Assembly (NCBI GenBank): GCA_965644295.1
Contig: CBFFRP010000125.1
Location: 62,001-126,000 of the forward strand
Length of the DNA: 64,000 nucleotides
DNA from: Paraphysomonas bandaiensis
Taxonomy: Eukaryota > Protista > Chrysophyceae
Direction: 5' to 3'
The notes under the pieces are model-generated. The model had not been told where the DNA came from. It saw nothing but the letters and a program-made list of their open reading frames with translations, and searched no databases. Within the stretch, counting starts at the first letter, position 1, and the number at the start of each line of letters is the position of its first letter. A program made the translations under genes and the position numbers. Shown here one piece after another: positions 16,494-45,508 of the stretch.

Positions 16494-17740
16494 CTACTTC
16501 TCGTTCGTCGAGCTTCGACTCTCCGGCCCCCTAAAAGGGGTTTTAAGTCTACATACAACATCCTCCAGGGCACTCAGACTTTCTCTTTGCTCTTTCACTT
16601 CATTCGATACCGCTGCTCGAAGCGAGGCAATCGACTCCAATAAATCGTTCATAGCTTCATCTTCCTTTGCAACACGAGGGAGACACATAGCTCTGCCAAT
16701 CGGAAAGTACGCTGTTGACTGATTCAATATTTGTTTTTGCATCCACCTCTCAATACCAGTGAGGTCGGTAGACTTCTTACTCTGTAAATACATCGAATAG
16801 AACAGATAATTCCATGTGAAATGATGCTCCTCAGTATGGTCTCTAAACTTCACCCTGTTTCTTTCAAATATCTCTCGTCCTTGTGAACATATAAAGCATC
16901 GATTCGATATATCATCCTCAATTGCATTTCTCTCACTTCTCAAATCGGCAAATGTATCAATAATAATACCAGTTATAATAGCTACCATAATGACAACAAT
17001 GAATATTTGATAGGTTATATCAAACACATACTTTTGTGCAGTATAATCTCCATAACTATTGAATAACGGCGATCCATTTAGCCCAAAATCTAAGTGCTGC
17101 CAAAACTTTGACGACAGAGTCAATGGAAATTCGTAATCAGTATCAGGGAAATTAGGAAACGTATATGTGTCGAAGCCAAACCCATATATACCAAGGACAG
17201 TATAAATCCAGCTTATTATGATACCCAACAACAAAGTTGTCAACACCTGATTCCCATTCACGACCACGGATTTCAAAACATACCCGAGCAGTTTTATGCG
17301 AACTGCAACATCCAGTACGTGGAAGCTGAAAAACGCCACAGAATATATATTTCCAAGAACAGAAGTTAAAAGGAAAGTGGCATAGTAAATAGTTTGAAAA
17401 TCCATAATCAAAAATATAATCGCCCAAACTTCATTCGGCAAAATTATGTCGCACAACTCATAAATAGATTCGACAGTTCTCGTAACATTCAAAACAATAG
17501 CCCCTGATCTTATATTCCGTTTCCAGCTCAACCCACGATTAACTGTAACCATGGCAGAACCCAGAGAAAAGTTGATTATTAGTAAGCATGACATCGCCAA
17601 GTGAAGCTTCATGAAAGGTTGTAAGTGACTGATATTAGAAACGCTAAGAAACTGGTTATCTCGACCATTTGATTGTTTTGATTCAAGGAGAATGGTTCCA
17701 TTGATATAAAACGTAAGACACATTGTTATCAAAACCCACC
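16494..17740 (-). other. IP3R/RyR-type 6-TM ion-transport domain, C2H2 zinc motif and C-terminal coiled coil of the giant channel
   Basis: TM1 'WWVLITMCLTFYINGTILL', TM4 'FFSFHVLDVAVR', TM5 'VLTTLLLGIIISWIYTVLGIYGF', TM6 'VFDITYQIFIVVIMVAIITGIIIDTF', then CFIC...HxxxxH. Confidence 0.92.
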
Positions 17741-23700: not shown

Positions 23701-26700
23701 GCGGCTATTATCCCTATAAAAAGTAATGTAAGATCCTCGACTTAACCTTGTCCCTTCCTCAAATACAACTTCTAACCCATCACACTCGATGCCCTCATCA
23801 TAAGCAACTTCTTCAAAAATATCACCACAAGAATTTTCAGCAACATGAAGGCTTTCATATACTCTCACATTCTCTCGATCTGAAAGAGACAATGAATCTT
23901 TGTATAAGGTGCTTGGGAACTTTCCTTTATTTGCAGAAAATTCTTCCTTCGACAACCCTTTCGCCATCATTTTCCAGCCCCACTTTGAAAAATGACCAAT
24001 GCTATGAAAATGAGCAATGAATTGATTCGATGGAACAAGCAATTCGTCACGAAACGAAGGAAAGCTCGACCCAATAAATTCCTTGGGGGTAAAAGTTGAA
24101 ATATCTTTTCTTCCACACTCGTCGCAGCGAAATATATTGTGATGAAACAGAGGGATCAGTAAATCTTTGTACTGAGAAGGCTCTGCAATTTCTCCAATAT
24201 AATTTCCATTTCCGTGGGGTTTGAAATCAATCCATTCTATTGATACCACGCGAAGTAGAGTTCCCACAGGAATAATATTGTCATTGCTCTCATTGCAACG
24301 AAAAAGCAGAAATTCCAAGTGTTCAATTTGTTTATCATTCATACTGCCTTTTCTTTTTCCGAGAATGTTTTTAGTTATGGCTTTCAGGCCCGCAGATCCT
24401 GAAACACAAAAATAATAGTCCTGTGAAGTCGATAGAGCAGGCAATAGGCGCACATAATCTACATCGTTGTTTACACTGTAGTCAGATAATTCCGTGTTCG
24501 ATGAAAACCACACCTTTACATGGTTATAATCTTCAATTTCCACCCGGAAAAAGAGATCTTGAGCGATGGGATCATACTTATGAGCGCTTTCGACAACATG
24601 TACACCATCGACAACACCATCCCCAGAGCAAAAAAATTTACGGACATCTTCAGCCAGTAAAGAGAAAAAGTCTTTCTGTATATCAGGTCGCAGTTGAACA
24701 TAATCAATGAACGTGGTAGCAAATTTGAGCCATGGCCGAAGTGTTTTCGCGCGTCCTTTATAGCCAAATGAATTTTCAGAAATTTTCAAAAAGAGTTCAA
24801 ACAGCCACTCAAACTCTTTAACATCGTTGCTGAAGTTGAATACGTATTTAGCATTGTCATCAAGGCACTTTGAAATCACATCAACGATTGCGACCGTAAA
24901 AGGAGACATTGCCTCTTTAAGTAATTCACTTGAGCATTGATCAGAGAGATTTAGTAGCAGTGGCATCACACTTTTGACATGAGTACAGAGGGCTTGTAGG
25001 GTAATGCTTTGTGTGAAGAGTAAATTTCGCCTCTGTAATTCGTTCAAATAATATTTAGTGGGGTACAATGGTAGCATATTGCTAATAATTTGTAATGAAG
25101 ATATAGCATCCCTAAAATTTTCATTAGCAACACACTTCTGAACGTCTTCTATGAGCTTATGCAAGAGTTTCGGGGCAACTGAATCATACATATTTTCCGA
25201 TGAAGCCGCATTAAGTAAATCACGAACGCCATATCGTTTTCCTAAGTGTCCTGCTAAAGTATATGTACAGTTGGAAGACGCAAGTTGCCTTCTATTTTCA
25301 TTGTTGTCCTTGCACCACGATGACAGCAACATACAACACGCTTCAAAAATACTGGCGAAAGAATCCACATGAGCAATCTCACTATGCTCCCACGCTTCTT
25401 CTTGCTGCAGAACATGTAGCACACTTTCAAGTAAACCCCAATTCGAAGACACTTGTTGTCGACGCCGTTGAGTGCGCAATATTGTCCATGGTAATGCCAA
25501 CTCAAACACATGATTGGAACCGAAGACAAATGACTGCTCAATGGCTGATCCTCTTGCGCATGCAGTAATTTGATACCCAGACCCATTATCACTTTTTTTT
25601 GCCCTGACGACACGATATAAGGCTCCACTGTTCTCTGACTCAGACCTCCAGTCAGGACCAACAGATAAAAACATATTCACTTCCGGTACAACACCTTCAG
25701 TGCGCCCATCAATTGCAAACCGAATCCTATGGATAGTTCGTTCTAGTTTTTGCTTCAATTGGGAGTTCGACATCAAATTTTCATCCAACACAACACTTCG
25801 AACTTCTTTCAAATCTCTCTGCAACAATCTGTAAAATGACTCATCGAAGTCGTCCTCAACAACACTTTGTACGTCAATTGAGGCATTTAATCTCTCCAGT
25901 GAGGTGTGCATCCGCACAAAGCACTTCATTGACGACTCAATCAAAGCAGGCACACCAGATACAGCCATTTGAATAGCAAGCCGACTAGGTGCGTAACCGT
26001 GATCCAGTATATGACTACCATTAAGCACGGACTGAAGTCTTGGAAATTGGACAGCGTATATGTCGTCGGACGATATTTCAACAGCGCAAACGTCAACTGC
26101 AACATCGCTATCGGATACTTCACGACTCACACTTTCGCGATAGTCGCTAAACATAGAGTCATCCCAAATTATCTCCACCTTATTACCATTTACAGCTTTT
26201 ACAAAGCCCTCACGGGCTCTCCTATCCGCTGACGGGTTCGTAAAGTGTAAAGTGCACTTCCTAGTGCACACACGAGTGCCTTCAGTAACAGCATATTCAG
26301 AAAGTGGAACATTGAATGAAATGCACCGAAAAACTTTATCAGGCATAGTCAAAGTCGAATTTTCGCGAAAGCTATATGATATCGCATCTCGGTGTATTGG
26401 TTCTTTAATTTTGCTGCCATCGTTGGAAACAACTTTCCGCACAGCAATCTTCATGCGCTCATATTCGCGCAATTGAATTTTGAGGTCTAAATCTATACAG
26501 AGCTCAAGTATCTCAACTACTTTTGTTCTCAACCGCACAATGCGTGATCTGCTGTGTGATATTCGTTCACTTTTCAATGCTGATCGCAAGCTAAACTTAC
26601 TAGAATACCGGCGTTCAAAAGATTTGGATGAATTTGCAGATCCCACAGACACGTTCGAGATAGATTTTAGCAGTGAATCGCGTAAATACTTGAAATTCGA

Positions 26701-29700
26701 AGCATCGTCATAATAGCCAGTTAAAATCATCCCCTTCAATAAATCTAAGAGTGAAAATGCCCTTGACACCTCCGGAGCCATATCATCATCGTAGTGTAAA
26801 ATATCATGAAGTGTATCGATACGCTCATATCCAGCTAAGTCGTCGCACAAAGACAGCCGGCGACCACTTCCAACAAACTCATTCATAAAGAGCAATAATT
26901 TGTCTTTATCAGTCGGGCCCAACGAACGTGCACCATTGTATGCATGTTCGACAGATATAGTTTCGTCACAAGAAATCATATCAATATTACATACATACAT
27001 ATGAAGCATTAAATCACAAAAAACTTGACTGTAATTTTTAATGTTGGCACAATCACTTCGATGAGGCCATAGCATACATGAGTACAACAGATCGAATGGC
27101 AGATACTCAGAAAATAGTTCACAGGCTTCGATATTTTTGTTTACGACAAGCCAATCCCACAGTCGAAACGAACTGTCCAAAAAGTTTCGAACATTAGTTC
27201 TCAACTCATAGCGATAAAATAACTCTAAACTCAACCACACATGCCCTTGTGTTCCTGTTGTTGCCGATATTTCTAAGCTGTCATTGACAAACCTGAACGA
27301 CAATAATCCGTTCCCTTTTGATTCTACATCACGCTCCCTTCTCTTCGCGTGATTTTGCGAAGACGCATTTCTAAAAAATATTTGTTTTATGATAAACATT
27401 TGGTCTTCTTCCCCACTGCATGACCTAAGGACGTGATTTTCTCGAATATAATCCAGTATGAGATTACTACCGTCAGCCACAGGAATAGAGAGCAGAGTCG
27501 TGACAGCGGGAATAAGGCAACAGTTTTTATATTCCAAAGCATTTCGCATAAAAAAATTATGTATGGACTTAGCATCCGACTGTGTCAATGCCCTCAGACT
27601 ACCGAAAATATAACTCCCTAAACTTTTCCAGCAAGAGCCTGCTAGAGACATCAATGAACGAATAACTGAAAAGTTTAATTCCGTGGAGCTATTCAGAAGC
27701 CGCAAACACACATCGACAAACTTGCGGCTAACTGGAGGTAAAAGAGAAGATATTGCATCATTCTTTGCCCAAAGGCTAATTATAGAGCACACTACAAAAA
27801 AAATCCTTTCCCAAATCGACTGATGTTGGAGAACTAACCATTTGATTTCATTGCTATCATTAAGTTTCATCGCAATGCACTCGAGAGTTTCTCTGACAAG
27901 CAAAACTGAGTCCATGAATCTTTCATCAATGGATTTCACATCTGAACGATTAACGTGAGTTTCAGCTTCCTGTACCATCAGTAACATCGCTTCCGAAATA
28001 CGATTCTGCAAAGCTTTAATGATATTGTGGTCATCGCCTTTCGACGAGGTAACAAGCTTGCAAAGAACCATAGCTGCTCCTTGTTGTAGTGCAATATTAT
28101 CACGTTCTTCATCTGTGATAAGATGACGACAAGTGGGAACTTTAGTTGTCGCAGTATCCACTAAAAACTTCAGTCCAGTTTGCACCAGTTGCTTCCGATT
28201 CGAAGGGTTTCGAGCCAAACTAAACAACGCAGCAGCAGCGTAGAACTTGATGAGTCGGTCAGAAGTACCGAGGCACATAATTAGTGGCTCAAAAACACCA
28301 TCTGAAGCCATTTTTTCCAAATTCTCAGAGTCAAAACATAGTTGCTGAATTATCCATGTACAGTGTCGACACGTGTCAATGTCAATTAGTTTCGACGAAT
28401 TATAAGTCAACTCGCAAACTTTCAACATGCTTTTCCACCATCCATCAGCAACCATGATAGCGGACGCACCTTTGCACTGTACAAACCTCGCCAAGGCAAG
28501 ACAACCCTGCCTTCGAATCGAAGCAGTTGTATTGCTGGCAAGTAAGCACGCCTCGCTAAGCCCAGCGCCTTGTCTATATAAAATATCGGTAGGCGCCGCT
28601 CCATCATTGGTGACAACAACAGTGCTATCCTGATTTATGTCCCTATGCGCGGATTTATTAAGTCTATCGGCATATAATTCAAAAGGCTTAGTGACTGATG
28701 CGATTTGTGCATACGCAATGGCGGCCCAACTCAATACGCTTTCATCTTCACTGTGAAGCATTGATAACAAGTGGTGGAGCCCCCCAGATTTTCGCGAATG
28801 ATTTAACTGAGGTAGCAAATACTGTATGTTACGCATTGTAAAGTCCTCAGAACCTAGAGTCCGAAAGAGTGGTCTAGCATGAAACTTGACTTCAGATTCC
28901 AGCGATGGTGAATCTAAAGAAACCATACCAGGGGACCCTGCGTGGTAACTATACCACACTCTGTCGCCTGGAATAGTTAAACGAGTTTCGGTAACTTTTC
29001 CGCGATGCTCAAAAGCCACATCATAGCCCTTGCAATCTGGACGCTCCTTATAAAAGGTTAGGACCTTTCCACTGTCGATATAGCAATGGGTATCGAAAAT
29101 TATTTCGATCTCGGTAGCCATATAAAAAAATATTCTTTTCATTTCAATATTCTGAGAGCATTGCGGAGAAATAACACTTTCAAACAGAGGATACTCGGCA
29201 ACCAAAGTTACCGAAAATCCTGGAGCGTCGATTGGTGCTTCTTCTGCAACGGCGGCAGGAGAAGCATATACTCTTGACATTGATTCAAACTTAAAATCAA
29301 TTGACAATTTATCCGTGTGATCAAACACAAATGTTCTATTTTTCTTCACAGCATCATCAATATCAGACTGGTGTATTCTGGTATTTGAAGGGTTAATAAT
29401 TATGACATCTTTTATTTCTTGACTGGACTCTTTTTCATGTGTATTAATTCTGCTGCAGACATGAAATGACATAGATATTCCAATAGCATGAGCAAACATT
29501 GCTTCGAAATGCATAGTATTCCCATTATTTGCAATCGCATAGTTCCCATTTGGAAAATTCTCTTCGTCAGTACACTTTACAATCGTGTTAATTAGCACTG
29601 GTTGGTAGTCTTTCATGTTGAAAGATGGCCTATGCCGTGAATAAACAAGACGAAACATCCAGGCAGCAATAAACGATTGAATAATAGAAGTGTCATCTGA

Positions 29701-32700
29701 ATCGAATGTTCGGTCGTGCATCCCAGTTATTAAATCAATAAGAGATCGCATATCAGGAATAATACTTTCGATTGCCACCCATGCCGCCGCACTTACCATT
29801 CCTGAAGTGCTGTCATTCGTTGCCCTGATAAGATCAACTATTGGGGGGCCGTTAATAATACGATCCCGGTAGCCCGAAGGACTCATATAAGTTGTACACT
29901 CAGGAGTATACCGAGCCAATTTTCCTACTGCAGATATTGCAGCAACTTTCGTACGTATATCAGTCGCCACAAGAAGTCGAAGCAATGCGGTGAACGAGTC
30001 GTTTTCGTAAGACGAGGTTTCCTCTGATGCAGAATCAGCCAATGGGAAAACATACAGGAGCAAACTGGTCCGCAACAACTGTTCAGATGATCGACCATTG
30101 AGTTCAACGTAAATGTTGTTTGTATGACCGGAGTAAATTTCACCTTGAAATATGCTTTTATCATTGGCTTCTAGCATAAATTTCGAAGTGCTTTCTGAAT
30201 CTTTTACATGGAGAGAAACATCATCATGCAAGGCGGATTTCTTATCCACCAAAACAGACACACCACAAGAATTATGAAACGACAATATATTATCGTATTT
30301 GTCGCGAACTACGCGGATTGAAGTATTGGGCAGCTCCAACTTTTCGGTACAACCAGTAGCACAATTGCGGGGGCCCCATTCCACAATTAAGTCCGAGGAA
30401 CTGACATGTATAATAACTCCACTGTGCCATTTGGAGGTATCCACAAATTTCATCATGTAATCATTGGTCTTAGTCACAATCATTCCAGTTTCATAGGGTC
30501 CCTCGTAATTTGGTAATGATGCAGCAAAGTCGGTACAAGTAATTCTTTCCAAATCACTTGTTGAATACAACATGGGGAAACTGTCACAGTCCTCAAATAT
30601 CACTTCAAAGCAAGAACCTGCTTTCGCCCATTCGTAATCATCACTAGCTATTTCATCCAACGCTATGGCTACCGCTCTACTGCAAATGACATCGTCAGCA
30701 CGAAGAAGCTGTAATAATGATCGCATTTTCCCACGAGCTACGAGCTCTGCACGAAATTTTTTTTCCATTGATAGAAGCCCAAGCAACTTTAACGTTTCGC
30801 TATCCAATGGAACCCTCTCAACGGTAAGAAGCCCCCGAGAGTCAGATTCGACCACCCAACCTCTATATTCATATGGAGATATCACTCGTAACTTTCGATA
30901 TTTATTGTTTGTCATAATACTTCTATCTACGATAATAATTTCCCCTTGGGGAATCGTTGTTTCTGGCTGTCCTTCGCACCCGTCAAGAGGAATCACGGAA
31001 AGTCCATTAGGCTGTATGACTTTATAACGCGAACTGCACATTAAATCGATAAGAGATTCTGCAGACCCAAAACCACTGCTGAATTCCCTCATAACTTTCT
31101 TGTTGCTCAATATCTGGCGCAAAGCTTTACATGCTGAAATCCTACTTCTTTCACTGCCACTTGATGCCAAAACTATGGAAAAATTGTCAGACAAGACGAA
31201 AAAAAGGGCAATAAAAACCTAAGAGTGGATCAACCCCATTGTCTTCCAAAATATCAATGCAGATTTGATCAGTGTCACCCAGCCCATCAGCTTCTCCGAT
31301 AACAGTTGCAGCGTATCCCCAATCCTCAACTCTCTCATCTGATGTAAATTTCCAATACAACCCACTCCCTTCAAAACGAATCGTGGGCCAATAACCAACG
31401 CCACATCCATGAAATTTCAACTGTCCTTCAGGACCGCATATCGGTATCTTATGATCCTTGTCCACAAAAAACTATAGCAGTATGTAAAAAAATAAATCTC
31501 AATTCTAGTTATGAACACCTCTAAGAAATCTCTATTCAATTGAGTGCTGCATCTCTCGTCAAAGACTATGGTGATTCTGGTAAAATGATCACCAAAAATA
31601 ATTTCACCAGACTCATCTGAAAATACATTACAAACTAACTTGTTAACATCAATGACATACCTGTGTTGGGTGCATAGTAGTGAGGCGATTGAATAAACTT
31701 GGACTCCGTGCAGGTGCGAATATTGTCCAAAGAAAACAAGTTAAAACATTTCACAATCCACAACGACAGATTAGGCAAATTCCTCTTCGGGACACTTAAT
31801 ACATCTGGTCTACTCTGCATAATGGCGACAAACCTTTGAGCAATTTCGACAAATGTATAAGGATCATTAGCCATCGTCTGTAGAATAAAATTACACGCAA
31901 CGTCAAACACACTACTTTATTATCATACCCAAACGGCAAGGGGGAGCTTTTCCCAGGACTGTGGATATTCCGGAATTGGAGAAAAAGGTTGAACCGGGTG
32001 CTTGAAAAACAACATCTCTTCATTACTCACTATTACAAGATCACTGTGTTCTTTCACAAAACTACCCCGAAGAAATTCAGAATCGATAATCTCAGCAGGA
32101 ATATGAAGATTCGCGATGCATGTCTCCGCCCAAAAAAATGCTGGGCCCAGATCTAATCCATCGGACGAAGTTGGCATCAACGCAAGTAAGCGAAACATAA
32201 CATCTAAATGAACCATCACTAATCGACCAACATTTGTGGCAGAAATAGTGGCCAAAGTTTCCAAGTGAGAGACAAATTCCTCGTCTGGAGGCTTCAGATC
32301 ACCATACGCTTCAATTTCATCCATAATGCGCTCCACTATCCTGGCAACACCGTCCACTTTTAGTACAGATTTCAACAGACTCCCACCATTTTCATGAACT
32401 TGAGCAACGGAAAAGAGTATGTTCAAGGTCATATTCTGCATGACTTTGTCAGTACTGTCAGCGTAGCGCCGCAATGAGTCAAAGATGTCGCTCACTTTCA
32501 TCAGACTGCTTCCAACAACAGATAACGCCTTGAGATGAAATGGTCTGCGTATCAAAAACTGTTGAATGTCCTCACTGGAAACAATCTCTTTAGACCAAAT
32601 TAAGTCGGCAATCCAATAATGCGAGTCTGGGTATTTCGATGCACCAAAAGTGCAAGGCATAACTCCTATACCAACTGGGCTGCTGTTACTCACAATTATA

Positions 32701-35700
32701 TCATCCACTGAAACAGCTTTGTCATGAACTCCGTTGATGACATAAGTCACAGTGTTTCTTGGAACATCAACCGTAACGACACAATGCGTCCATCGTTTCG
32801 CCATCAAGCATGCGTTGGAACATATTTTTTTTACTATAATTTCGCCGTTGCTCTTTTTAATTGGAACATCGATGCATAATCGCATCGACGGTTGCAGTGC
32901 ACAAAAAAATCCAGATTCCCCATTAATGGGCAGGAATTCATTTTTACCGTAATTCACATGTGACCATTCTTTTGTGTTCATGTTGTAATACTTCAGACTA
33001 TATGCTAATGATCCATCCATGGTACCATCAGCAAATATTTTGTCCACTGCTGTACATGCTGCTGCATAACCTACAGGAATTGATTGAAATGGTTTCTGAC
33101 CAAGATTTAATACCACAGTTTGCCCGGCACCAATTGTTATAGCGGGGTAAAAACCGCTGTCCCTATACCATGCATTACAATATTATTTCACATAAATTAG
33201 TACCTTACCAACTTGGGCCGTATCTGCCTTCTTTCATTCCTTCGTCGGGATCTGGTCGGTTTCCATGAGCTATCTCAGTAAAAGCCGTGCCCAGAGGAGA
33301 ACCATTCAGTGTAAAAGACATAACTCCACTTTCGAAGTCCAGCAAGGCACCAACAACATCGCTGGCCTTGATCGGGGTTGTCAAGTTTCCATAAGGTTGC
33401 GATCCGTCACCACAAAACAACGAGAACTTCTTCTGGCATCTGCAACTCAGGAGTGAACACAGCTAGTATTGCACATACACGCAACTTACTTGGAAGGAAA
33501 GTAAGAATAACTGCAGTCATCACAACCTACAAATATACTAGTTGATTCATCAACTAAAGATATTTCAGGGAATGATTTCGAAGCCCAACCAATCTGCAAT
33601 TACAGAACTCCCCATCAAACTTACTCAACTACAATCAATCGACACTTACCATGCAGTCGCTTCCATCGGATTCAAAAGTGACTTCATAATAAACTTTTCC
33701 ATTTCTCAGTAAATGGTCATTCAAGTATGTCCTGCTATGTCTTTTGGAATGTAATCTTCCCTCGAAAGGGCCTTTGAAGAAGACGGGAAGTCCATCCCGA
33801 TTAATGTAGCCATTCGGCAATGCCCAAAATGAAACACTAAACGACTCCACAACAGGTTCTTGCTCCTTCAGTCTCTTGCGCTGAGATTTCATACGACTCA
33901 TAGCTGCCTGAGAGAGGCCTCTTGAGCTCATGTTTACTCGCTTCAAAGGGGGGGTCGGTGTGCACGGTGTTGTCGGATAAGCATCGCTGTTGGGCTGTAG
34001 ATGATCATATGATGATGAAACATCCAACCACAGAGCTGGCATACAACCAGTCACTTCCAACGATTTATTGTACAAACTCATAGCACGACCATCAGCAATC
34101 ACTGAGTACGCAACATCGGAAATATCGCATCGAGCTTTTTCGCACAATTTCTGAAGTAAAGTCAGCGCACCTCTCGCTTCGTCTTCACTTTCATTTATCA
34201 TGGAAAACAAACGATTCATACAAGAGTCGTCTGATGATATCGTCCCATAAAAGTCATCAAACGCTTGAGGAATGTCTAAAAAGTCTGTTATTCCGTTTTC
34301 AGTATCGAGAAGTGTATCCAATGAGTGCACAACTTGCAAAGCAGCCTGTTTTAATATTCCAGTCGTCATACTTCTTTTCAGTATCGGTATAGCATCGTCA
34401 ATGAATCTCGCACGCGCATTTTCCTCATGATCTCGAACAGATTCCCGGACAGTCTCAGAATCCAACAGAGACGGAATCAGCTCCAGTACAAGCATGGCTG
34501 AATCAGCGTCATCTGATTGAAGAAAGCACGCCAAAACATCCTCAATTCTACCATTTTCTATTCCCAAATGCGCCCGTAAAAATAACAGTGCAAAGTCCTG
34601 AATTTCTGGGTTGGGATTCGTAAGAAGTCTTATAAAAATAGTTACACATCCATTCTCTTTAATAAATTTGAGAGAAGTTTTACTCGGAGAATTGTTATCA
34701 GTTGAAGATAGAAGCATGTTCAAGGTTGTAATAACTACATCATCTGAGCCTGTTAGTAACAAACTTTCAAACCATTTCAAACCATACTTCTCGACAACAT
34801 CATTTCTTAGCTTAGATGAGCGTGCCACATTGGCCAATACCAAGCCAGCTGCAGAGCATGTTTTGCTTTGAACTAAACTTGTACAAGAGTTAAATAACGC
34901 AGGCGTTGACACCAACTCTCTAACAATATCGTGGGACATAGAGTTTACATTCTTGAAATGCGGTTTTACTTTCATTAAGAAACCCCAATACTTCTTCTTC
35001 ACTTCCTCGGAAGAAAACTTAACATAAACCCTATCCTGGGGAACGGTAACATCGTTCCAGTTTCCGGGGTCTGTATACTTACCACTAAACATTGCCGGCA
35101 TAGGCTTTCGGTGCAACTCACTTTCATACATGACGTACTCTTCGTCCCGCATTTGCTGCGTCAAAAACAGGTGTAAGAGATCGCTGTCACGTTCCGTTTC
35201 ACATCTACTATCAAACGTTATCGATAGTGATTCAGCATGTGGGAATGAAATCGATGCTTCAAGTGTATACTCTTCGCAATAACTACCGTCGACTCGCTCA
35301 GTCTCTAAAACTCTAACAATAGCTTTTCTAGGATCATTGTCACGTGTTAAAATGTATAATAATTCAGCAAAATTTTCACGCAAAGTAGACTGATGCTTTG
35401 ACATTGTAATACTGTCGAGTCCTTCTCGAAAAACACTTCTTCCAATTGTCCGGCACACCCCAACATCATTCATGTCGTGTACAGGCCTCACACCGACTCG
35501 AAATCCCCAATCTTCAGAAGATAGGTCTGTACGAAAGAGTAATATGCATGAGTTAAGATCAAATACAACAGGGCAATCCACATAAGGGAAATTGCTTTCC
35601 TCGCACGACCCAGTAAAACTAATCAGTGAGTAACTCATGCGAGATGTAGTAATGACGTCAAGGAAAGCAGATCCATGTCCTAAACTGGACCTCCTATCAA

Positions 35701-38700
35701 ACGCGAGTTCAATGGCAACAGCTCCCGGAAAGTCGACTTGATATATCTTTTTGGCTAGTTTTCCGTATGGGTGCGTACTCTCATATATTTCTCCACAGTC
35801 GCCGATCCATTCAACAAGATCATCAGTAAATGGAGCAACTACAAGTTTAAAACGCCCTTCATTCAAAGCATCAACAGGATGATCGATATCTAGCCACATG
35901 TTGGGTTTGGATAAAATCACTGGGGGGTATCCATCTATTCCGGGAAAATGCCGCCTTCCGGCAGTACAAGAATAAGCACCTACAAGACGATCATCATCTT
36001 CAGAGCTGGCATATCGCTTGTTGGGCAGCCCGCTATACACCTTGACAACATAAGAAGGATCTTCATTGTCACATCCAGTTTCCTCTTCATGAAAGCAAAG
36101 TTGAAGCATTTGAGTGCCACGAAACCTTACCCTTATACGTCCGTCTTTTCCAGGAAAATCAGTTGAAGAAGACAGAATCTTTGCTCCCTCAATAGATGCC
36201 AGTCGATCAAAGATGGAGCGTCTTTGAAATCCACGTATATTGAGGGGATACGCAACGAAACGCCAACCCCATAAGGAGTCTATATCATTGAATTCAGTGA
36301 TAAACAAATAATAAAATTCGTCAGCAGGAATAATTAATGGGTCATTTATATTAGTCGGAAAATTCGCAGGAGAAATACCTCCTGCACCCTGTTGACCACC
36401 ACCATACCTCCATGTACCGTTCACGACCAACTTTGACATCGACGGAATATCATTGATTGAAGGGTGCCTTTCTCCAGAGAAGGTCGGGCCCATTTCTTCG
36501 TTCCCGTGATCATATCGCATAACGTAGTCTTCATATTTGTCGTGAGACTTCAAGAACAACACTGCATCCTGAAAATCTCGACGATTATTGCCCGTTTCCG
36601 GATACATTCGCGTTTCTGACCTGGGATCGAATACAACAGCGATGGCCGAAGCTCCAGGGAAACTAATCTTATTCATCATGGAGAAAGTTTTTTCGCCACG
36701 ATTTAGTTGACATGGATGTGAAGTTTCAATGACAACATGATCCTTACTTGCGGATATCACGTCGTGCAATGGATCTGGGGGTGGATCTACAGGGAAAACG
36801 GAAAATTCGAAACCCCATTGAGGAGTAGCATTCGCAATTGCAATGTTGTACCATAACGATCTGCGACGTGCTTTGGAAATAAAATCCAACTTCCTATCGT
36901 TCAAACATATCAGTAAAGGGTCCACACCGTTTACCCCAGGGATATTGTCAGGATGTCCAATAGAATAAGATACGGGCGTCTTGTTACGGTTTTGTGACAA
37001 GCTAGGATTATCCAAATAAAACACCAAACGAGACCCCTCTGGAAATCGTGTCTTGGGGTTGAAAGCAACGCAACAGTACTCTGTTGGAGCATCCATAATA
37101 ACTTCATGAACTTCATCTATACCTACACGACATGGGTGTATGCTACCTTTGATCTTTGCGCCTTCCATATTCATATACTCGCCGTATTTTGTAAATGAGG
37201 TATCGACGATTCCATATGCAATCAGTCGATAGCCCCAAAACGTAATATCTTCATCGGCAGTAAATTCAATCCACACTCTGTTGTATGGAAAAATCAAGGG
37301 CGATGAAAATCCGGGACATGATTCTGAATACATTCCACTCAATTTATCAGAAATTTGTGCAGCCAACTTGCCCTTTTCGTCCAGTAGTGCCGGGTTTTGG
37401 GAGTAAAATACCACATAGTCGAAGCATTCCTCCGTAATTGTGGATGGGTCAAATTCAATATGAATACCGCTGTAACCCGGGAAATGTATTTCATGAACGT
37501 TTTCGGTACCCCCCTTATACGGATGACTTGATTCCAACAATATATATTTCTTATCATCATCCACATCAAAACCAGCCTGATTGACAAAATATTGATACAT
37601 GAAATCCATAATTGTTTTTCGATCTGAAAAACTTGTACATAAGCCATCATATAATTCAGGCTTTTCTTTACATTTTTCGAAAAGAAGTGCCATGACATGA
37701 CAATCTTCGAATACTGTCATGTGAAAATCGCCATTTTCAATAACTTTTAAAAGTGTTTTTGATGCCCATCGACTGGTGTCAGGATCTGCGCTATGCAGTA
37801 GATTCATACAAACTTTTACGTGTTCGAGCTTACGAGGACACGCACCATACAGCCCCCTAGCAACTTGTCGCTTATGGTTCACTAAAACACGGGTCCTTGA
37901 CGCCTGAAACTCTCTCTTAGATATAAATAAACCGTCAGAGTCAACAACAGGTCGATACCCATCTGCACTGCTACCGCCATAAACTTTCCAACATATCCGT
38001 TGCCAAGCACTTAAACGACCCAAATGCACAGGCTTTGATTCATGGCGTATTACTTCTAGAAACGAAACCACCCGAAAAGTAGGTGGCGTGTAAAGAAAAT
38101 CCTTCTGTCCAAAGTTAAAACGGAGAGGGTTAGTTGTTTCGCGTCCAATATACACCGCTGGTTGAAACCCACATGCCCACAAATCTGACTCGCCATGTCT
38201 TCTTCCTTCAAAACAGGGACCCTTCATCACGGAATGACCATTGACATATATGTGTATTCGAAAATGAATGAGATCTAAGTGAAAACCAACTACGTCACCC
38301 GGTTTTAGAGGAGGTATTTTTAATTGTACCGTTGATGTGTACCATTTCAACTCTCGCTTACCAAGGTCAAAAATAAAATCGAATTGTGAAACCTCTTCAC
38401 CAAAATGTGACTTTCCCGTCATGCTTGGAGCCAAATAATCCGACTTTAACCTTGTACTTTGAGGAATCGTCAAACCAATGCATACATTGGAAACTGATTC
38501 GCAAACGACCTCAAAAAATAGAGCACTTCGATATTGCGGTGACGGAATGGCAATTGGAATGGCAACAAGGTCAGCACACACACTCTTCGATTCAGTGGAA
38601 GTGTTGCACACATCGAAGAGAGAAAATGGTGTCGCAGATTCGCTTTGCAAAATTTCCAATAATTTTGGAAGACCACGACTAATAAGTTCTTCGCGAATCT

Positions 38701-41700
38701 GTCCTTCTTTAGTGAACATAAGATTGGCCAGTGCACGAGATGCATATAGTTCTGTCATTTCATCCGACGATTGTAGCCCGTTCAAAACTAAATCCAAACA
38801 TGGAGTACCGACAACATTGGCAAGATCAATTACGCTGTGACGAAACAAATCACCGAAACTTGGCATGACATCAAATATATATCCGCAATTTATATCCTTG
38901 ATATCTTCGTTGTTTTGATAAGAACTTGTGTTTAAATCAACTGTCAGTCTACCACCTTTAAGAGAAAAAGATTCCCAAAGTGTTCCCTTTGAAAACACTC
39001 TAGTCGCAGAGGGATCCAAAGGGTCGCCTTGTAGAGTTAGCTCAGTAGATTCAGGTAATGACGAGCCTCCTTGAAATTTTACATTCAGTTCTATTGCCAA
39101 AGGAAAATGCAATTCCCTTCTGTACGAATTGGTTATGAGTGGTAAAGGTGAGATATCCGTGTAGAACACCTCCTTCATCCAACGAGGCTGCGAGGTAAGC
39201 AATGACACCACCGCAATCAGCCACCGCTTTGTTGTAGCAGTTTCACCGCCGTAATGAGCTACATTGGATATAATCTGCTTCAGAATATCCATATTTTTCA
39301 CGATGGAGTAAAGAATCTTATTGGCCGAATGTGTAACCTCACCATCCGACTTCAATGTATCAATCACCTTCAAAAACAGCTGCAACTCCTCACAATTCTC
39401 ACCAATTAAAGAACAAATGAAACTGTAATCATGAGTTGAATACGAAAAAACATGACTGAGTACCGAGAGTAATAGACGAATAAGGCTGACATGTCTATCA
39501 ACTTGAACCTTTGTAGGACGAGATATAACAACTTCATAGCCAGCATTTTGTCCAGACACATCGGAGTGAAAAACTACAACGCACGATTCTGCTGGGATTA
39601 TCAAAGGAGATGCAACGGAAGGTAACTCGTGGGCAGCACTCGTCCCACTATACCTCTTCCGACCCCAAAAATCCCTTCGCATAGAATTTTTGAAAAAGGT
39701 AATATAATCGCCCTCTTTGTTGATTGAGGAATGGGGGTGAAAAACGACCTCAAGGGCATCAGACCCAGGTATTTCTACAATTTCTTGAGTATTCACATTC
39801 GGTGCATACATTGCATTGGGAAACCCATCTGAGGACAAAACCACAGCTTCAGGGCGCGACTTTCGCTCATCGTACGGATTATCTGTAGCTGTTGCATAGC
39901 AGCGCCATCCCCAATTCGACCGCTTACTTGTCGGAGTAAACTTAATCCAGACTCTATCACCAATAACGACCAATGGATTGTCATACGTCGGCCAGCTATT
40001 CTTCCCATAAAACGGACCACTATACGACGCCAGACAAATACTTTCATCTTCATCTTCAAAAAAGCTAAGAACGTCGCTTTTTTCTTCCGTCTGAGTCCGC
40101 CGGTCAAACCATATCTTCATAGCTCTATCCATGTCAATGTGTTCGTTATGTTCGGATTTGACAATACTATGCGAGGCAACAGAAGGTGGCCCGCTACGTT
40201 TGCCATCAATGAAAGAATGCGCTGTTGACCTGGATTCACCGAATGCGGATTTATTATCATCTAGCCATTCTTCCGCCACTTCACTATGTAGATTATCTCC
40301 TGTGCGGGGGAGTATAAATAACTTTTTATACGAAGGACCATAAGAATAAGGATGTTCACTCTCCATAACAGTTTCATATGAAGTTTCTCCAAATGATGAT
40401 TGGGTGCGCAGCAAACTATTGTCATCGTATTGTGATAGCGATATCCTGTCTAGGCATCGTGACACAACATGGCGCAAGTACACTGGCATCATCAATCCAT
40501 TATCCAGTTTTCCTTCTTTCAGCTCTGATGAGGCCTTGCTATCAGAACATAGGAAATTGAGCGCAGACAACATGTCATACGCGTATTCAAAAGAGCGGGT
40601 ACTCTCATCATCTCCATCATCTATATTATCCGTGGGAAGGGTAAGCATAAGGTCAATATCAATCTTGCTAAATTCGGCCATGAGTGCTTGTACTACAGCT
40701 ACGCCGCTCTGGTAGCATAAAGTCGATCCAATAAGTTGCAATGGAAGCTTTTCTGATGCGCGCTCCATGCTCTCAACAGAAAGGGGTCGGTCATAGAATA
40801 CGAGGTGCTCAACCTCACCAGTCATGGTATCTTCCAGCCCAGGGACAATGACATCTACTCTACCCAAGTACCAAGGGCAGGAGAGAGCACCGAGAAGATA
40901 GTTAAAGCCTTTCCAGGTCGACTCGGTGTAATCCTTCCAGAACGACTCTGTGTGATTCCGGTCGTCGATATGAATACTGACTCGCCCTCCATCTTCACTC
41001 GAGAACCGAATAGCGATAAAATTCCAATGACCGCATTCAATTTTCCCTTTGCTTCGCACACTGTACTTGTTCGAACGTTGAGCCTTTCCTATAGAGCCCG
41101 TAGCTTCTTTTAAACTAACCTCCACTTGCAGTTTTTTCGTTATTCTAACACTCAAATGGGGTTTATCCCTATCTCCTCCGAAAAATAGAAGGGTACCACT
41201 ATCCGATGTGCTAGGATTCAGATCACTACTCACACGGCGTTGTATTGAAGCCCAAAACGTAATCGTCAGTCCACCGTTAAAACAACTACTTATATCGGGG
41301 TGAACCAACCCCTTTACAACATTCATTTTATCAAATAAGTCAACATTTCCTAAACAGTACTGTTGGCGAATGGCACCATCAAGCTGAACAAGGTCACTCT
41401 CCCAGCTTGGAAGTGGAATACCTGCTTCTTTATATTCCATTTCTTTTGTTGATAACTCTGCACAGTCAATTTTGCAACTGTCCGCGCTATACTTCATCCT
41501 AATTTTCTCTGCCAATTCGCATTGCTTCTCCAGGTACATTAACTGTTTCTTTCCATTCATGGATTCCTTATTTTCTTCAAGAAGAATACCAATAAACTGC
41601 AACACTAAACACCTTACACCATGCCGTGGATGTTTCAGTAATCGAAACACATCGCCCAAATCTTCCGGAAGAATATTTAAACCCACTAGATTATCAGGAT

Positions 41701-44700
41701 TACTGACAATATGAATAATAATTCTCAGAACTGGTTCATGGGTGTTATCGTAGTCAAAGTTTAGAAGTTGGATAATATTAAGCAAATGCTGAGGTTTGAC
41801 ATTGCAGTCTTTCGCATCTAACGTCGATACAGTTGATATGGCAGCAAACTTCTCCAATGTGGACACCAATTGATGAACAAGAGATTGCAAAACATCTGCC
41901 CGTAGTTGTGAGTAGACACTTCGACTGATATCGAGTAAGTTATACGTCTTACTAACAAGCCGTACCAATGTGTGCGACTTTTGCAGTGAAGGAGACTGCT
42001 GGCCACTCGAGGGAAAAGATCGAGAACCTTGATCATGAAACTTTAAAGCTTCAAGCAAAACTAAAACAATTATATCATCAGTTCCAGGGCCTTCAGATTC
42101 TACTAACTTGAGTTGGGTCGACCTCTCCCCTAAAGTCACTTGCACGTGCGCTGGAGATACCGCCATGCAAGTTAAAAGAAGAGTTTTAATATCGTTGTTT
42201 AAGGCGATTCTTGTCTCGTCCGCACTTTTCCCCCACAGAGAAACCATATGTGCAATAATTCCGCTTTGAAGTACTTTACTAACTTCAGAACTCTCGTTAT
42301 TTATGCAGATATTGTGAAGCAATCGGACACCTAGGAGATGCACCCATGTCTTATCTTGAACAGAAAATAGGGACTCAACACTATCCCGAAATTGGTCCCA
42401 TTGCATTGTTTGCAGTAGCAGTGAACGTCCATTCGTTGTCGTGAAGTTACACACTATACCTGCCGCAAATTTTGATGTCCGATAGTCGTGACTTTTCATT
42501 AGCATGATTAAGAGTGTCATATACGACGAGACAAATTCCTCCACATTATCTTTCCCGAAGTCCTGCGTTGTTGTATCTGCAGGAGCAGAAGCCACCCAAT
42601 CATCGACGAGATTACCACTCGGAACGGCAACAAGCTTAAAACCCCACGGCAACAAATTTCTGTCCAAAGGATAACGATCAGGGTCACAATCAACGCTGTA
42701 TTGAACCCAAAAAGTTTTCGAAGGGACTGGGATATTTATACTCTGCGAATGCCCAATTCCCGGTAATAATTTCCCGTACATTTTATCTCCAAATCGTTTC
42801 AATGCTTTTCCGTCTCCATGTCCACCTGATACTTCTGATCCATTCACTAAAATCTCTAAGTAAGGAGGTTTATCCAAATCCGTCTGTGACAAACTACTGT
42901 CGTAATCCATATCAGACGAAGGATGAAAATAAATATCCACAGACTCTTCAGCTGATGGCACAGAAACCTCTATAATTTGGTTGCGTCCACGGGGCAATGG
43001 ATGTCTAGACTCGGCTACAACCGCATAAGGCGTAGCGGTTAGAGCATCAAATGCCGGTATCACAGCCTGATAACTAAATCTCCAGCCCCTAAACCTCTGC
43101 AAGGAATCTGCTTGCCAAGTGTATGTAAATTCGCTTCCTTCAACATACAATGGCTTCACACCACCAACTCCAGGAAATCTAGAGCCACTATACGGACCAC
43201 CCAACAGGATAGTCGCATCTCTATCCAAGAAAAATGTGATCATATCGCACTGTTCTTCCGTCCGAGATTTCTCATCAAATTTGATCATAATGCCTTTAGC
43301 ATGGCGAATTTCGAGAGTTTTCTTTTCACTGGTACTGTCTTCGGTAATAGACTCAGTGAACACGTGATCTGTAGCAATCGGAGGTGAGGGCCGTATTTCA
43401 TCGAAATATTTTCCATGAATATGAATTATGTAACCATTGGATACTTTATCTCTACTGATTGCACTCTTAATTTTAACTACAACTTCGTCACAAGGAAGTA
43501 AAAAGCTGGAGTTTCGATGTCGATACTTTCTTGAAGCTGAGTCACTGATGGAATACGTCACCGGATTACCTCTGTAGTCATTATATTCAAACAACAGAAG
43601 GTCTTTCCCTCTACCAATATCCATCTGCTCAATGTCTATTAACAAAGCCGCTGCTCCAGGGATTTCAATCCTACGCTCTACATGTACATCCATTTTCAAT
43701 GGGTGAACACTTTCCTCTGTAAACGAACTCGGAAGGCACTGCAGCTCATGAGTCTTGTTATCCGATCCCTGTTCAATAAGACGAAGAGTTGAAGCATATA
43801 ACAAACCAGTGATGATTTGAAGTTTACTATTTGTACCAATATCTTCCACATTTTCCACATCGGTAAGAAAATCTTCGTCTACATCAAAGAGTATCGTGTG
43901 ACTATCTGAATCACTCAGTCCAAAGGCATATTTCATCATTGCCGTTTTGTCCATTGCTAGATAACGGAGAGCTGTCCATGCATTTACAGAAACTTCGGCG
44001 CCTGTCACTTCGCAATATCCTAACATGTGTAGGATTTCTAAAAATCCATTGAAAATCATAGCGCTTCTACAGCGTATTAACAATGCGTTAGTGCCACACG
44101 CAAGATGCATTTTATATCGTACCTGTTTTCTGGCTCTGATGCAATTCGAGCAATGCAACTTGATGCATACAACTTGCACCGATCATTCCCAAGTGTGCAC
44201 ATATTCTGTAAACAGCTGAATACTTGTCGTCGAACATCAGACTTGTCGGCTAGCAAGTCTACACGATTATATCCGTCACTCATCACGTTATCCAGGCACA
44301 AAGCCGCAGCACTTTGGGAGTGAGCATCATCTGGAAAACGCAGAAAAAAATCTATTCCAAACAAGTGAAGAAACTGCGCCGTTACATGAGACGAAATAGT
44401 AATGTTTGCCAATGAGAAGGCGGCAAATCGCTTTGTGAAATCATCCTCGCTACTCAGGTATCGTGTGAGAAGTTTAACTCCCTCCCCGTCCCGATAGTTC
44501 ACAATACGAAGGCGCCGAAAGTTTACTTCATCATCAACTTGCTCAGAACTGTGAAGTGATTGGGACGTAAATTTCGCAACTACTGAAAATTTCCATCCGT
44601 AGAAAGAGTCCACAGGCTCGGCACCTACTCGAAAGCTGAAGAAAAGACGATCGCATGCATTAAATTCCAAATCATCGAATTGTGTACCAGATAAAGCGAA

Positions 44701-45508
44701 CTTAGGAGACTCTTGAGTGTACTCATCCAGATAAAAGCAGAGACGGTCCACATTGGGAGCTGTACAACTTGAATCGTCGAACCGCACATATATCTTAGAG
44801 GCACCAGGTATAACAATTTTTTCATTGGGTATAGAACAAGACTTGCGATAAGGGTGCCGCGTTTCAAAAGTGAAAAGTGCATGGCTGGAACTGCAGTCTG
44901 TGGGCGACAAAGTAGACCGGAATATAGTCAGTGTTACCCATCTAGCTATTATATGATCAACTGGAGAGGGCATTGCATACGCGTAACCTGAAATAAATAC
45001 ATAATGCCAAGAAGTTACTGTCACTAGCTCAACAAAACTTACGAATCAATTCATGAATATTTTCAGATATGCTGTCTAATGCTTGATCGCAGAAATCATG
45101 TGTTGGTTCTTTAGCCCACATAGCATTGATAAGGCGGATCAGTAGACGTTGCCCGGTTGGTTTCAAAAATAACGTTTCTCTGTTCTTAGCGACAACCTCC
45201 ATGTTTTTAGCCATCGACTCATCTTTGGTAATGTCAGATAAAGAGTGCGAAGGAGTAACTATTGCACTACGGAGAGCCTCTGCATACAATGATTGGGCAC
45301 TTTTTGCACCCGCATATGCTAGAGACGATAGTCTGCGAAGAGTTTTTTCACTACTCGATATGTCAAAGCTGTGCTCTGCAGTGAGGCCAAGACATTGAAA
45401 TATGTTTTTCCTGTACTCTTGAATATGGTCACTCCTGCTTTTATCAATAAGGCCACGAATGAGTTCAGCAAATGTTTCGTCATCTCTATCGACGCCACTA
45501 TTAGGCAT
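16494..45508 (-). CDS. Giant (~9,487 aa) IP3-receptor/ryanodine-receptor-family channel with CUB-like, SPRY, LamG-like, SH3-like and ARM modules
   Basis: Eleven GT-AG introns (44988-45042, 44067-44122, 33594-33649, 33440-33489, 33163-33208, 31878-31928, 31617-31660, 31472-31518, 31173-31218, 19192-19247, 18939-18982; 551 bp total) join all ORFs in frame: 29015-551 = 28464 nt = 9488 codons. The C-terminus has the RIH-associated motifs 'FLQRACDGQYSRAQDYFRE' and 'LTDMTQGPNVGNQ', six TM segments, and 'GIIIDTFADLR...CFIC...HTEEHHFTWNYLFYSMYL'. Confidence 0.9.

Follow-up and report, generated by a model that had tools for sequence, protein, structure and literature searches.

A predicted giant channel of the IP3R/RyR superfamily in Paraphysomonas bandaiensis in which N-terminal beta-trefoils were not found

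In canonical IP3R and RyR, both beta-trefoils sit directly before ARM1, and this N-terminal pair rings the fourfold axis, coupling ligand binding to the pore. Ca2+-release mechanisms are poorly known in marine stramenopile-type protists. Among the Paramecium Ca2+-release channels (CRC), some groups lack the InsP3-binding domain (PMC3213138). Here, we describe a locus of P. bandaiensis (assembly GCA_965644295.1, contig CBFFRP010000125.1, positions 62,001-126,000 of the forward strand); this stretch of 64,000 nt is called the window, and its positions serve as coordinates for the channel gene, which lies on the minus strand (Table 1). We consider it probable that the locus encodes, in one gene, an IP3R/RyR-superfamily channel of ~9,500 residues in which the trefoils were not found and that this channel is a member of a protist subfamily both rare and conserved, non-IP3 gating being an inference. 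The recognisable channel forms the C-terminal third of the protein. The subfamily has 15 representatives among 1.84 billion, and no description of it was found in the searchable literature. Gene searches were run exon by exon, the exons never being joined into one protein.

Table 1. Predicted features of the channel gene, in window positions
Feature	Position	Strand	Basis or content
Whole gene	16494..45508	-	tentative 12-exon model, ~9,485 codons; mini-intron walk; no RNA evidence
Exon 1	45043..45508	-	155 codons
Exon 2	44123..44987	-	first CUB-like module, then ARM block begins
Exon 3	33650..44066	-	3,472 codons; at least 10 CUB-like modules, BEACH-protein-like ARM + ConA/LamG unit, one SPRY, several ARM blocks
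Exons 4 + 5	33593-33490 + 33439-33209	-	SPRY middle part
Exon 6	31929..33156	-	end of second SPRY + LamG/ConA-like domain
Exons 7-9	31219..31877	-	one intron-split CUB-like module; junctions uncertain
Exon 10, first 1,045 codons	28036..31172	-	module series up to ARM1
Beta-catenin-type ARM block	28848-28036	-	abuts ARM1
IP3R-type scaffold ARM1 (RIH1)-helical domain-ARM2 (RIH2)	24624..28035	-	model + profile alignments
FRLWDWLVVNKNIEACELFS	27168-27109	-	minus-strand translation
LLYSCM	27090-27073	-	minus-strand translation
VFCDLMLHMYV	27024-26992	-	minus-strand translation
LKGMILTGYY	26739-26710	-	minus-strand translation
TKVVEILELCIDLDL	26526-26482	-	minus-strand translation
Degenerate MIB_HERC2/SH3-like barrel just before RIH2	25489..25707	-	family profile vs MIB1 8.6e-10
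Pfam RIH (RYDR_ITPR), borderline	25092..25479	-	20.2 bits hmmscan; 25 bits six-frame search
QRRRQQVSSNWGLLESVLHVLQ	25470-25405	-	minus-strand translation
CMLLSSWCKDNNENRRQL	25335-25282	-	minus-strand translation
CUB-like modules + SPRY insertion between ARM2 and ARM3	21301..24159	-	~950 residues
ARM3 Ca2+-sensor motifs LQRAC-D-GQ... and LTDMTQGPNVGNQ	18900..19290	-	across exon 10/11/12 junctions
S5-pore-S6-CTD channel domain	16692..17456	-	phmmer vs PDB
Stop TAG	16494-16496	-	gene 3' end in exon model

Channel scaffold, Ca2+ sensor and pore

A sequence-only reading of this DNA had quoted seven strings as parallels of IP3R segments, and the minus-strand translation contains all seven, exactly at or close to the places it gave. 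It had put the IP3R region at 25250-27700; similarity to IP3R holds there both at the profile level (hhalign) and at the structure level (AF2/Foldseek), but the start had to be moved to ~28035 and the region reaches at least 24624. In Foldseek, the 18 leading matches of an AF2 model of the tile 28173-24574 (pLDDT 76.9) were all IP3R1 or IP3R3 (E 4e-9 to 5e-7), above generic solenoids, and model residues 47-1184 align by structure onto IP3R3 434-1470. With hhalign, the family profile was compared with the canonical IP3R paralogs of the same genome: tile residues 205-508 correspond to paralog residues 634-1019 (E 2.8e-6, probability 88%), pairing two motifs of the earlier reading with their IP3R counterparts, and tile residues 739-1120 correspond to the second RIH region of the paralog (1289-1620; E 6.9e-4), collinear with the first alignment. 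Judged from these profiles and a predicted structure, the resemblance of the scaffold to IP3R is more than chance. Its similarity to metazoan IP3R is visible only by structure or via the own-genome paralogs; against PDB, exon 10 (3,974 aa) matched nothing but Vac8 ARM in plain phmmer, and the ARM1/HD profile (A3) gave chance matches only in hmmsearch; searching the genome itself with the scaffold tile brought up no paralog. The N-terminal half of ARM1 is matched by structure only and is invisible to hhalign and hmmsearch; against the paralogs, hhalign gave nothing past the C-terminal piece already aligned, and the IP3-contact residues R504, K508 and R511 therefore cannot be mapped.

The ARM1-HD-ARM2 arrangement is uninterrupted as in IP3R, its sole insert being a 70-residue MIB_HERC2-like barrel (strands at 835-886 of the scaffold model), at whose site Pfam MIB_HERC2 also matches in the relatives P0003, P0005 and P0012. 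RIH reaches 35 bits in the relative P0007 and is matched at the homologous place in six relatives. RIH domains within an ARM solenoid, a criterion of the superfamily, are present in the predicted scaffold. That this RIH match could be the first RIH, with trefoils just upstream, was rejected, the structure having two RIH-type ARM domains at IP3R spacing.

The ARM3-like region carries the family QGP..NQ motif, and its hhalign match to the paralog is weak (E 0.012, probability 3.7%), at the right place. Pfam RIH_assoc has no match in the giant gene and scores 26.7 and 19 bits in relatives, under the 28.5 cut-off, and hmmsearch of the ARM3 profile (A7) against PDB gave chance matches only. By motif comparison with a canonical paralog and P0012, both Ca2+-sensor glutamates read as Asp; the first of these ligands straddles a predicted splice junction, for which there is no transcript evidence, and both D-G-Q and D-x-x-Q-G-P also occur in the contiguous relative P0012. 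In human IP3R1, E-to-D at the Ca2+-sensor positions leaves channel function and weakens the response (PMC9522344). Asp for Glu predicts here an altered, probably lower, Ca2+ sensitivity, for which there is no gating measurement.

As predicted from its sequence, the protein meets membership of the IP3R/RyR Ca2+-release channel superfamily by its homologous pore and CTD. The IP3R-lineage channel proposed by the earlier reading stands as far as an IP3R-type scaffold and a pore are concerned, but IP3R as opposed to RyR lineage is not shown and remains unresolved, since phmmer of exon 12 against PDB scored RyR and IP3R3 identically (both 1.1e-36, 129.4 bits). We regard as unlikely, yet possible, that the channel is not of IP3R lineage at all and is instead either an RyR-related channel that has lost the NTD or a separate, deep branch. 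In that case, the uninterrupted ARM1-HD-ARM2 arrangement would be the ancestral state, as it may simply be, and the SPRYs would be either common to it and RyR or convergent. Besides the equal pore scores, the RyR match of which lies in a single 255-residue stretch, it is favoured by the RIH2 profile, whose best PDB matches are RyR1 470-605, and by the N-terminal SPRY profile, which matches RyR1 SPRY2 at ~1e-6, although the DDX1 SPRY outscores RyR SPRY2. The Foldseek top 50 for the scaffold model speak against it, with 27 IP3R entries and no RyR; however, RyR chains of >3,000 residues are not aligned by VIA, and this structural preference is partly technical. Moreover, unlike in RyR, the ARM1-ARM2 stretch has no SPRY in the scaffold model and no RyR repeat, and Pfam RyR-repeat had no match in any exon.

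The region before ARM1 and the IP3 site

The extension upstream of the IP3R-type scaffold comes to ~5,670 aa in the exon model; the sequence-only reading was right about a large foreign N-terminus but had set it at ~5,900 aa, and the ARM, SPRY, LamG-like and CUB-like modules that it listed there were all found by domain and profile searches. MIB_HERC2/SH3-like units, missing from that list, occur upstream as well. The position directly before ARM1 is taken not by trefoils but by a beta-catenin-type ARM block, and the ~5,400 residues before this block consist of CUB-like sandwiches, SPRY, ConA/LamG-like and MIB_HERC2/SH3-like units and more ARM blocks. Upstream ARM repeats score 1.7e-8 with Pfam Arm and 1e-12 with beta-catenin, and ~12 of the ~17 CUB-like modules of the whole protein lie upstream of the scaffold. 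Against ARM+Laminin_G_3 clusters of BEACH proteins, residues 450-1300 of exon 3 reach scores of 0.95-0.96, and exon 6 (Pfam Laminin_G_3, 4.9e-5) aligns with P0002, P0004 and P0006. Exon 10 opens with helices, an SH3-like unit, a MIB_HERC2-like unit with a small beta unit, and helices again, followed by a beta unit with a CUB-like module and then the beta-catenin-type ARM block. A second AF2 model, of the 1,100 aa just upstream of ARM1, likewise contains SH3/MIB_HERC2-like, CUB-like and beta-catenin-type ARM units.

Neither MIR nor Ins145_P3_rec could be found upstream of the scaffold, as the sequence-only reading had claimed, the Pfam, hhalign and PDB profile searches all being negative. In six-frame searches of the whole genome (E<=1), the Pfam profiles of these two domains gave 12 and 9 matches, all on other contigs and none here; ten own-genome paralogs score for these domains up to 4.7e-29. 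Neither domain appeared in an hmmscan of each exon (E<=5) or in the relatives P0004, P0006, P0017 and P0020. The upstream profiles gave nothing in hhalign against the canonical paralogs, exon 3 being without similarity to canonical IP3R, and against PDB they matched only ARM, SPRY and MIB_HERC2, no trefoil. The second model has no trefoil-sized unassigned beta unit; its small beta units (49-119, 290-385 and 520-660) were identified by sub-alignments and not by individual fold search, a wide VIA structure search of this model returned ARM repeats throughout and was uninformative on them, and the profile of one beta unit (b3) was blank against PDB.

Thus, the suppressor domain/NTD-A and IBC-beta/NTD-B were not found before ARM1, and a very divergent trefoil in the unfolded exons 1-9 is not excluded. 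Such trefoils, kept but too diverged to detect and thousands of residues away from ARM1, strike us as improbable. Only 2,300 of the ~9,485 residues were structure-modelled, exons 1-9 (~4,600 aa) being covered by sequence/profile methods and one language-model look-up; in RyR, SPRY and RY domains are inserted past the N-terminal solenoid, and divergence is extreme, the scaffold itself being unseen by plain hmmsearch against metazoan structures. Nevertheless, the profile methods that recover ARM1, HD and RIH2 against the own paralogs give nothing upstream, where most of the sequence is already assigned (~12 CUB-like modules, SPRY, LamG, ARM, MIB_HERC2). Exon 1 has no Pfam match and is shorter than even one beta-trefoil, exon 2 opens with a CUB-like module, and a divergent neighbour gene lies only ~1 kb from exon 1, so that the intergenic gap leaves no space for additional N-terminal domains. 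Finally, trefoils went undetected in four relatives too, and in all known members they adjoin ARM1, as the ARM block does here.

Without IBC-beta, the clam-shell IP3 site could not form and IP3 would hence not be an agonist. That something else gates the channel can reasonably be inferred from the undetected IBC-beta half of the binding site, but it is not a result, as there are no gating or binding data. Through the paralog alignment, the position of the IP3R1 ARM1 motif DYRKNQ reads GEEDQ, a charge reversal that is a lead only. The channel would most likely still open via its conserved Ca2+-sensor site, where ARM3 meets the CTD, and the giant N-terminal platform may bind ligands (protein or other) and bias the ARM scaffold, by analogy with partner proteins on the RyR cytosolic shell. 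Assembly, location, selectivity and gating as a Ca2+-release channel are likewise inferred, in the absence of functional data.

One gene or several

We tentatively read the locus as one gene, on an exon model without RNA evidence, because mini-introns cut through both a SPRY and a CUB-like module and because relatives have these domains in the same order within one protein, which reaches up to 7,139 aa. The second SPRY, whose first strands lie in exon 3, is interrupted by three introns of 50-56 nt, and its motifs stay in register over GTAAGT...CAG mini-introns; introns cutting domains measure 44-56 nt overall. The CUB-like halves of exons 7-9 match in neighbouring open segments at 31740 and 31471, the junctions of exons 7-9 and 10/11/12 remaining predictions without transcript evidence. 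Residues 25-297 of P0017, which shares a contig with P0002, align with exon 2 and run straight on into exon 3, P0004 and P0006 match exons 3, 6, 10 and 12 in collinear order, and P0020 is one protein of the order SPRY-CUB-LamG-MIB-ARM...MIB-RIH-SPRY-RIH_assoc-Ion_trans. That two or more adjacent genes were merged, a large ARM/CUB/SPRY scaffold protein and then a shorter channel, is very hard to sustain: RNA evidence is absent, the junctions at 31929-31172 are weakly predicted and P0012 is called as a 4,005-aa protein beginning just ahead of the ARM block, but the SPRY and the CUB-like module each span putative gene boundaries, P0020, a 90%-identity cluster mate of P0012, includes the N-terminal modules in its single protein, P0004 (6,404 aa) and P0006 cover the equivalents of exon 3 to exon 10 or 12, and the strand has no stop-and-restart with a promoter-sized gap. 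The possibility that P0012 is short by nature was rejected given the length of this cluster mate.

Comparison with known channels

A wider reading, to which we give even chances, is that of a third architectural class: "mega-channels" of 7,000-9,500 residues, conserved in several protist lineages, which would have lost the trefoil pair and fused to ARM1 a platform of ARM, CUB-like, SPRY, LamG and MIB_HERC2 modules, otherwise those of giant HECT ligases and BEACH scaffolds, and in which protein or glycan partners and a modified (Asp/Asp) Ca2+ sensor would control release. If true, control would be neither by IP3 nor by the N-terminal gating ring of RyR. A subfamily without the trefoil pair, yet with ARM1-HD-ARM2-ARM3 and a pore, would be a natural test of gating requirements. 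A tetramer of such ~9,500-residue subunits would come close to 4 MDa, and we know of no larger ion-channel subunit; it would show how many interaction modules the scaffold can carry.

With metazoan IP3R1-3 (PDB 8EAQ, 7T3R and 6DQJ), the predicted channel shares the uninterrupted ARM1(RIH1)-HD-ARM2(RIH2) of similar length, QGP..NQ in ARM3, S5-pore-S6-CTD and an acidic residue at both Ca2+-sensor positions. Unlike them, it has no detected suppressor domain or IBC-beta trefoil, ~5,670 extra N-terminal residues, a MIB_HERC2-like barrel ahead of RIH2, a ~950-residue CUB-like/SPRY insert between ARM2 and ARM3, Asp for Glu at the Ca2+ ligands and a total size ~3.5 times larger. RyR1-3 resemble it in giant size and in having SPRY domains on an ARM/RIH scaffold; its pore is as close to theirs as to that of IP3R, and gating that depends on Ca2+ and not on IP3 is presumably common to both. 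However, RyR keeps both N-terminal trefoils, none of which was found here, and has SPRY1-3 and RY1&2 inserted after the first solenoid and before the handle, a stretch that is uninterrupted in the giant channel, whose SPRYs lie elsewhere; RyR repeats, which RyR also has as RY3&4 in the bridging solenoid, were not detected. The Paramecium CRCs provide a precedent for losing the ligand-binding N-terminus, but they are of ordinary size, and a multi-thousand-residue CUB/SPRY/LamG/ARM extension is not reported in that study (PMC3213138). The canonical IP3R paralogs of the same genome (e.g., L009:1247-8737:-) are alignable in the C-terminal part of ARM1, HD, RIH2, the ARM3 motif and the pore; unlike the giant channel, they have strong Ins145_P3_rec and MIR, ~2,900 aa and a voltage-sensor-like insert. 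The extension itself uses the module vocabulary of HECT ligases with MIB_HERC2/SPRY and of BEACH proteins (neurobeachin/LRBA/Alfy), and CUB-like modules are common to it and the HECT protein P0018; the giant channel is without the HECT or BEACH catalytic/signature domain, and the likeness concerns interaction modules only.

The IP3R-type helical scaffold

The sequence-only reading had proposed that the predicted giant channel keeps the helical scaffold of IP3 receptors (IP3R), and all the strings that it quoted were found in place in the minus-strand translation. Among 1.84 billion representative proteins, only 15 relatives were retrieved for a tile of 1,200 aa (window 28173-24574, minus strand), and all 15 are collinear with it. 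Several of them give Pfam RIH matches at positions homologous to the tile, such as P0007, with a second-RIH match above the cut-off (35 bits), and P0005, with a match to the end of the first RIH (24.7 bits). The AlphaFold2 model of the tile, built on this 15-sequence alignment (A1), is mostly helical (mean pLDDT 76.9), and Foldseek placed IP3R1 and IP3R3 structures at ranks 1 to 18 (E 4e-9 to 5e-7), with karyopherins, BIRC6, and other solenoids below them. As a test independent of the structure model, hhalign against five canonical IP3R paralogs of the same genome (A2) matched residues 205-508 of the tile to residues 634-1019 of the paralogs (E 2.8e-6, probability 88%) and residues 739-1120 to the second RIH, at 1289-1620 (E 6.9e-4). 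In the first of these alignments, VFCDLMLHMYV falls on L..LYVDREPQ of the paralogs and LKGMILTGYY on KLV.FNFYG, in agreement with the IP3R parallels that the sequence-only reading had drawn for these two motifs. The scaffold claim was thus confirmed both by Foldseek on the tile model and by hhalign to the paralogs of the genome itself. The spacing of the scaffold is IP3R-like, its sole insert being a degenerate barrel just before RIH2 (see table).

A modular N-terminus without detected trefoils

The second part of the claim was that the IP3-binding beta-trefoil region (suppressor and MIR trefoils) appears to have given way to a foreign N-terminus made of ARM, SPRY, LamG-like, and CUB-like modules. 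These modules were borne out by hmmscan, PDB profiles, and an iterated HMM of the CUB-like ES.HP(Y/L)...FD...WG module, which counts ~17 copies, with no fewer than 12 lying before ARM1; in relatives, the Pfam CUB matches reach marginal significance. In exon 3, residues 450-1300 are similar to the unit of BEACH proteins that joins ARM to a ConA-like domain (scores of 0.95-0.96). The 1,100 residues that lead up to ARM1 were folded in a second AlphaFold2 model (pLDDT 69.4), which gave the succession of units listed in the table.

Features of the scaffold, of the second AlphaFold2 model, and of the window
Feature	Position	Strand	Remark
IP3R-type scaffold	~28035 to at least 24624	-	
Degenerate MIB_HERC2/SH3-like barrel	25707-25489		profile vs MIB1 8.6e-10; strands 835-886 in the tile model
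Helices, first unit	second model		
Small SH3-like unit	residues 49-119, second model		after the first helices
Beta region, helices either side	residues 188-378, second model		first part MIB_HERC2 (MIB1 2.7e-9)
Beta region, after helices	residues 525-768, second model		second half homologous to own CUB-like modules (E 3.2e-8, probability 95%)
CorA-like Mg2+ transporter gene	window 9424-10914	-	Pfam CorA, 4.9e-12

None of the searches made detected a trefoil upstream. Six-frame Pfam searches of the whole genome (E<=1) gave 12 Ins145_P3_rec and 9 MIR matches, none on the contig of the giant gene; all lie on other contigs, with canonical paralogs reaching 4.7e-29. With hmmscan of every exon (E<=5), no trefoil family was found, only SPRY, Arm/HEAT, Laminin_G_3, RIH, and Ion_trans. 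Neither exon 10 residues 1-1100 (A4) nor exon 3 (A5) showed similarity to the paralog alignment. Against PDB, the sole matches of A4 were ARM repeats of the beta-catenin type (1e-12; at ~770-1024 of the profile, adjoining ARM1), and those of A5 were ARM repeats and SPRY (DDX1 SPRY, 2.3e-7; RyR1 SPRY2, ~1e-6). The relatives P0004, P0006, P0017, and P0020 are likewise without a detected trefoil, and the 1,100-aa model contains other folds. A trefoil could still hide in the N-terminus, exons 1-9 (~4,600 residues) having been examined by sequence methods alone and three small beta units of the second model without a fold search of their own; we hold this to be very unlikely.

The ES.HPY CUB-like module of the channel extension also occurs in a ubiquitin ligase of the HECT type that carries MIB_HERC2 and SPRY (P0018 and P0023, JGI; 2,794 and 5,338 aa), from which the "foreign" modules may have come. 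The 2,329-aa relative P0013 carries a Jacalin-like lectin domain (residues 1336-1434) among CUB/SPRY inserts, no more than a hint of possible carbohydrate binding by the inserted platform of some members.

One predicted gene, its neighbor, and its paralogs

The source genome (62.5 Mb, 669 contigs) is eukaryotic and intron-poor, and very long open frames are chained on the minus strand from 45508 to 16494. When the best GT...AG mini-intron was used to bridge every in-frame stop, the prediction was 9,485 codons in 12 exons, separated by 11 introns of 44-56 nt; searches were run per exon, the exons being left unjoined. The least secure junctions lie within 31929-31172 and on either side of exon 11. 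Three mini-introns cut one SPRY between exon 3 and exon 6, its motifs staying in register, and one CUB-like module is divided between exons 8 and 9. Of the relatives, which come from other assemblies, P0004 (6,404 aa) aligns in order with exons 3, 6, 10, and 12, and P0006 (5,260 aa) with exons 3, 6, and 10. P0017, a single protein, takes in the equivalents of both exon 2 and exon 3 and shares its contigs with P0002, the exon 10 equivalent. P0020 is a single 7,139-aa protein (SPRY-HEAT-CUB-LamG-MIB_HERC2-ARM ... MIB_HERC2-RIH-SPRY-RIH_assoc-Ion_trans). Because of the split modules, the relatives collinear across junctions, and the single protein P0020, we conclude from prediction, without RNA evidence, that 45508-16494 is one gene.

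All introns of this gene (e.g., 45042-44988, 44122-44067, 33649-33594, 33489-33440, and 33208-33157) are 44-56 nt long, with GTAAGT-like donors and YAG acceptors, and several interrupt an individual folded domain, either SPRY or CUB-like. Exon 1, whose 155 codons are too few for even one beta-trefoil, is separated by ~1 kb from a divergent, head-to-head neighbor (46573-52446 and 52504-53742, plus strand). This ~2,370-aa protein has a borderline RIH as its sole Pfam signal (residues 1654-1776, 21.4 bits). By hhalign it matches RIH2 of the giant only weakly (E 0.0026), and no pore was detected in it; it may be a soluble RIH-containing protein adjoining the channel gene. Elsewhere, two pore-bearing paralogs of ~10 kb with weak Ins145_P3_rec/MIR matches (L010, G000:C395:120500-131334; L011, G000:C144:123191-133577) may be divergent family members of intermediate size. 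The canonical paralogs (L009:1247-8737:-, residues ~1050-1185; same place in L012-L015) share, between the helical domain and RIH2, a conserved voltage-sensor S1-S4-like stretch, in whose S4-like run every third residue is Arg.

Calcium-sensor motifs, proposed working, and comparison with known channels

Exon 12 (S5-pore-S6-CTD) matches RyR and IP3R3 PDB chains equally (1.1e-36), about ten other pore paralogs are present in the genome, and the tail of exon 10 weakly matches paralog 1936-2056 at the expected region (hhalign E 0.012). The pore of the superfamily and the IP3R-type ARM1-HD-ARM2 scaffold were demonstrated; the end resembles ARM3, by this weak match and by its sensor motifs. The giant's sensor motifs are LQRAC-D-GQYSRAQDYFRE and LTDMTQGPNVGNQ, and their counterparts in a canonical paralog MCEGHYTPNQD and LEVIQGPCAGNQ; both sensor Glu positions are Asp, and the adjoining His is Gln, in the giant and in the contiguous relative P0012. 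We take these positions to be those of RyR1 E3893 and E3967, the two Glu that bind activating Ca2+. In human IP3R1, the Glu ligands of activating Ca2+ are E1938 and E2002, and E-to-D substitutions kept conductance and gating mode with a reduced response (PMC9522344). We infer that, without the IBC-beta trefoil, the clam-shell IP3 site cannot exist; Ca2+ would gate the channel with shifted sensitivity, and the N-terminal platform of interaction modules would modulate this gating.

The evidence does not decide between an IP3R and a RyR lineage: the pore is no closer to one than to the other, and RyR chains were left out of the VIA structure alignment because of their length. The uninterrupted ARM1-HD-ARM2 scaffold may be ancestral. 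RyR has its own SPRYs, but at positions differing from the giant's, and Pfam searches of all exons found no RyR repeats, so that we read the giant's SPRYs as putative independent acquisitions. Loss of the InsP3-binding domain within the superfamily has a precedent in the Paramecium CRCs (PMC3213138). Our literature search found nothing on giant members bearing CUB, SPRY, and MIB_HERC2, and such forms are absent from the account in which brown algae have IP3Rs and diatoms lack them (PMC11085791). The present analysis contributes a structural map of the scaffold, searches for trefoils with negative outcome, and the Asp/Asp reading of the sensor.
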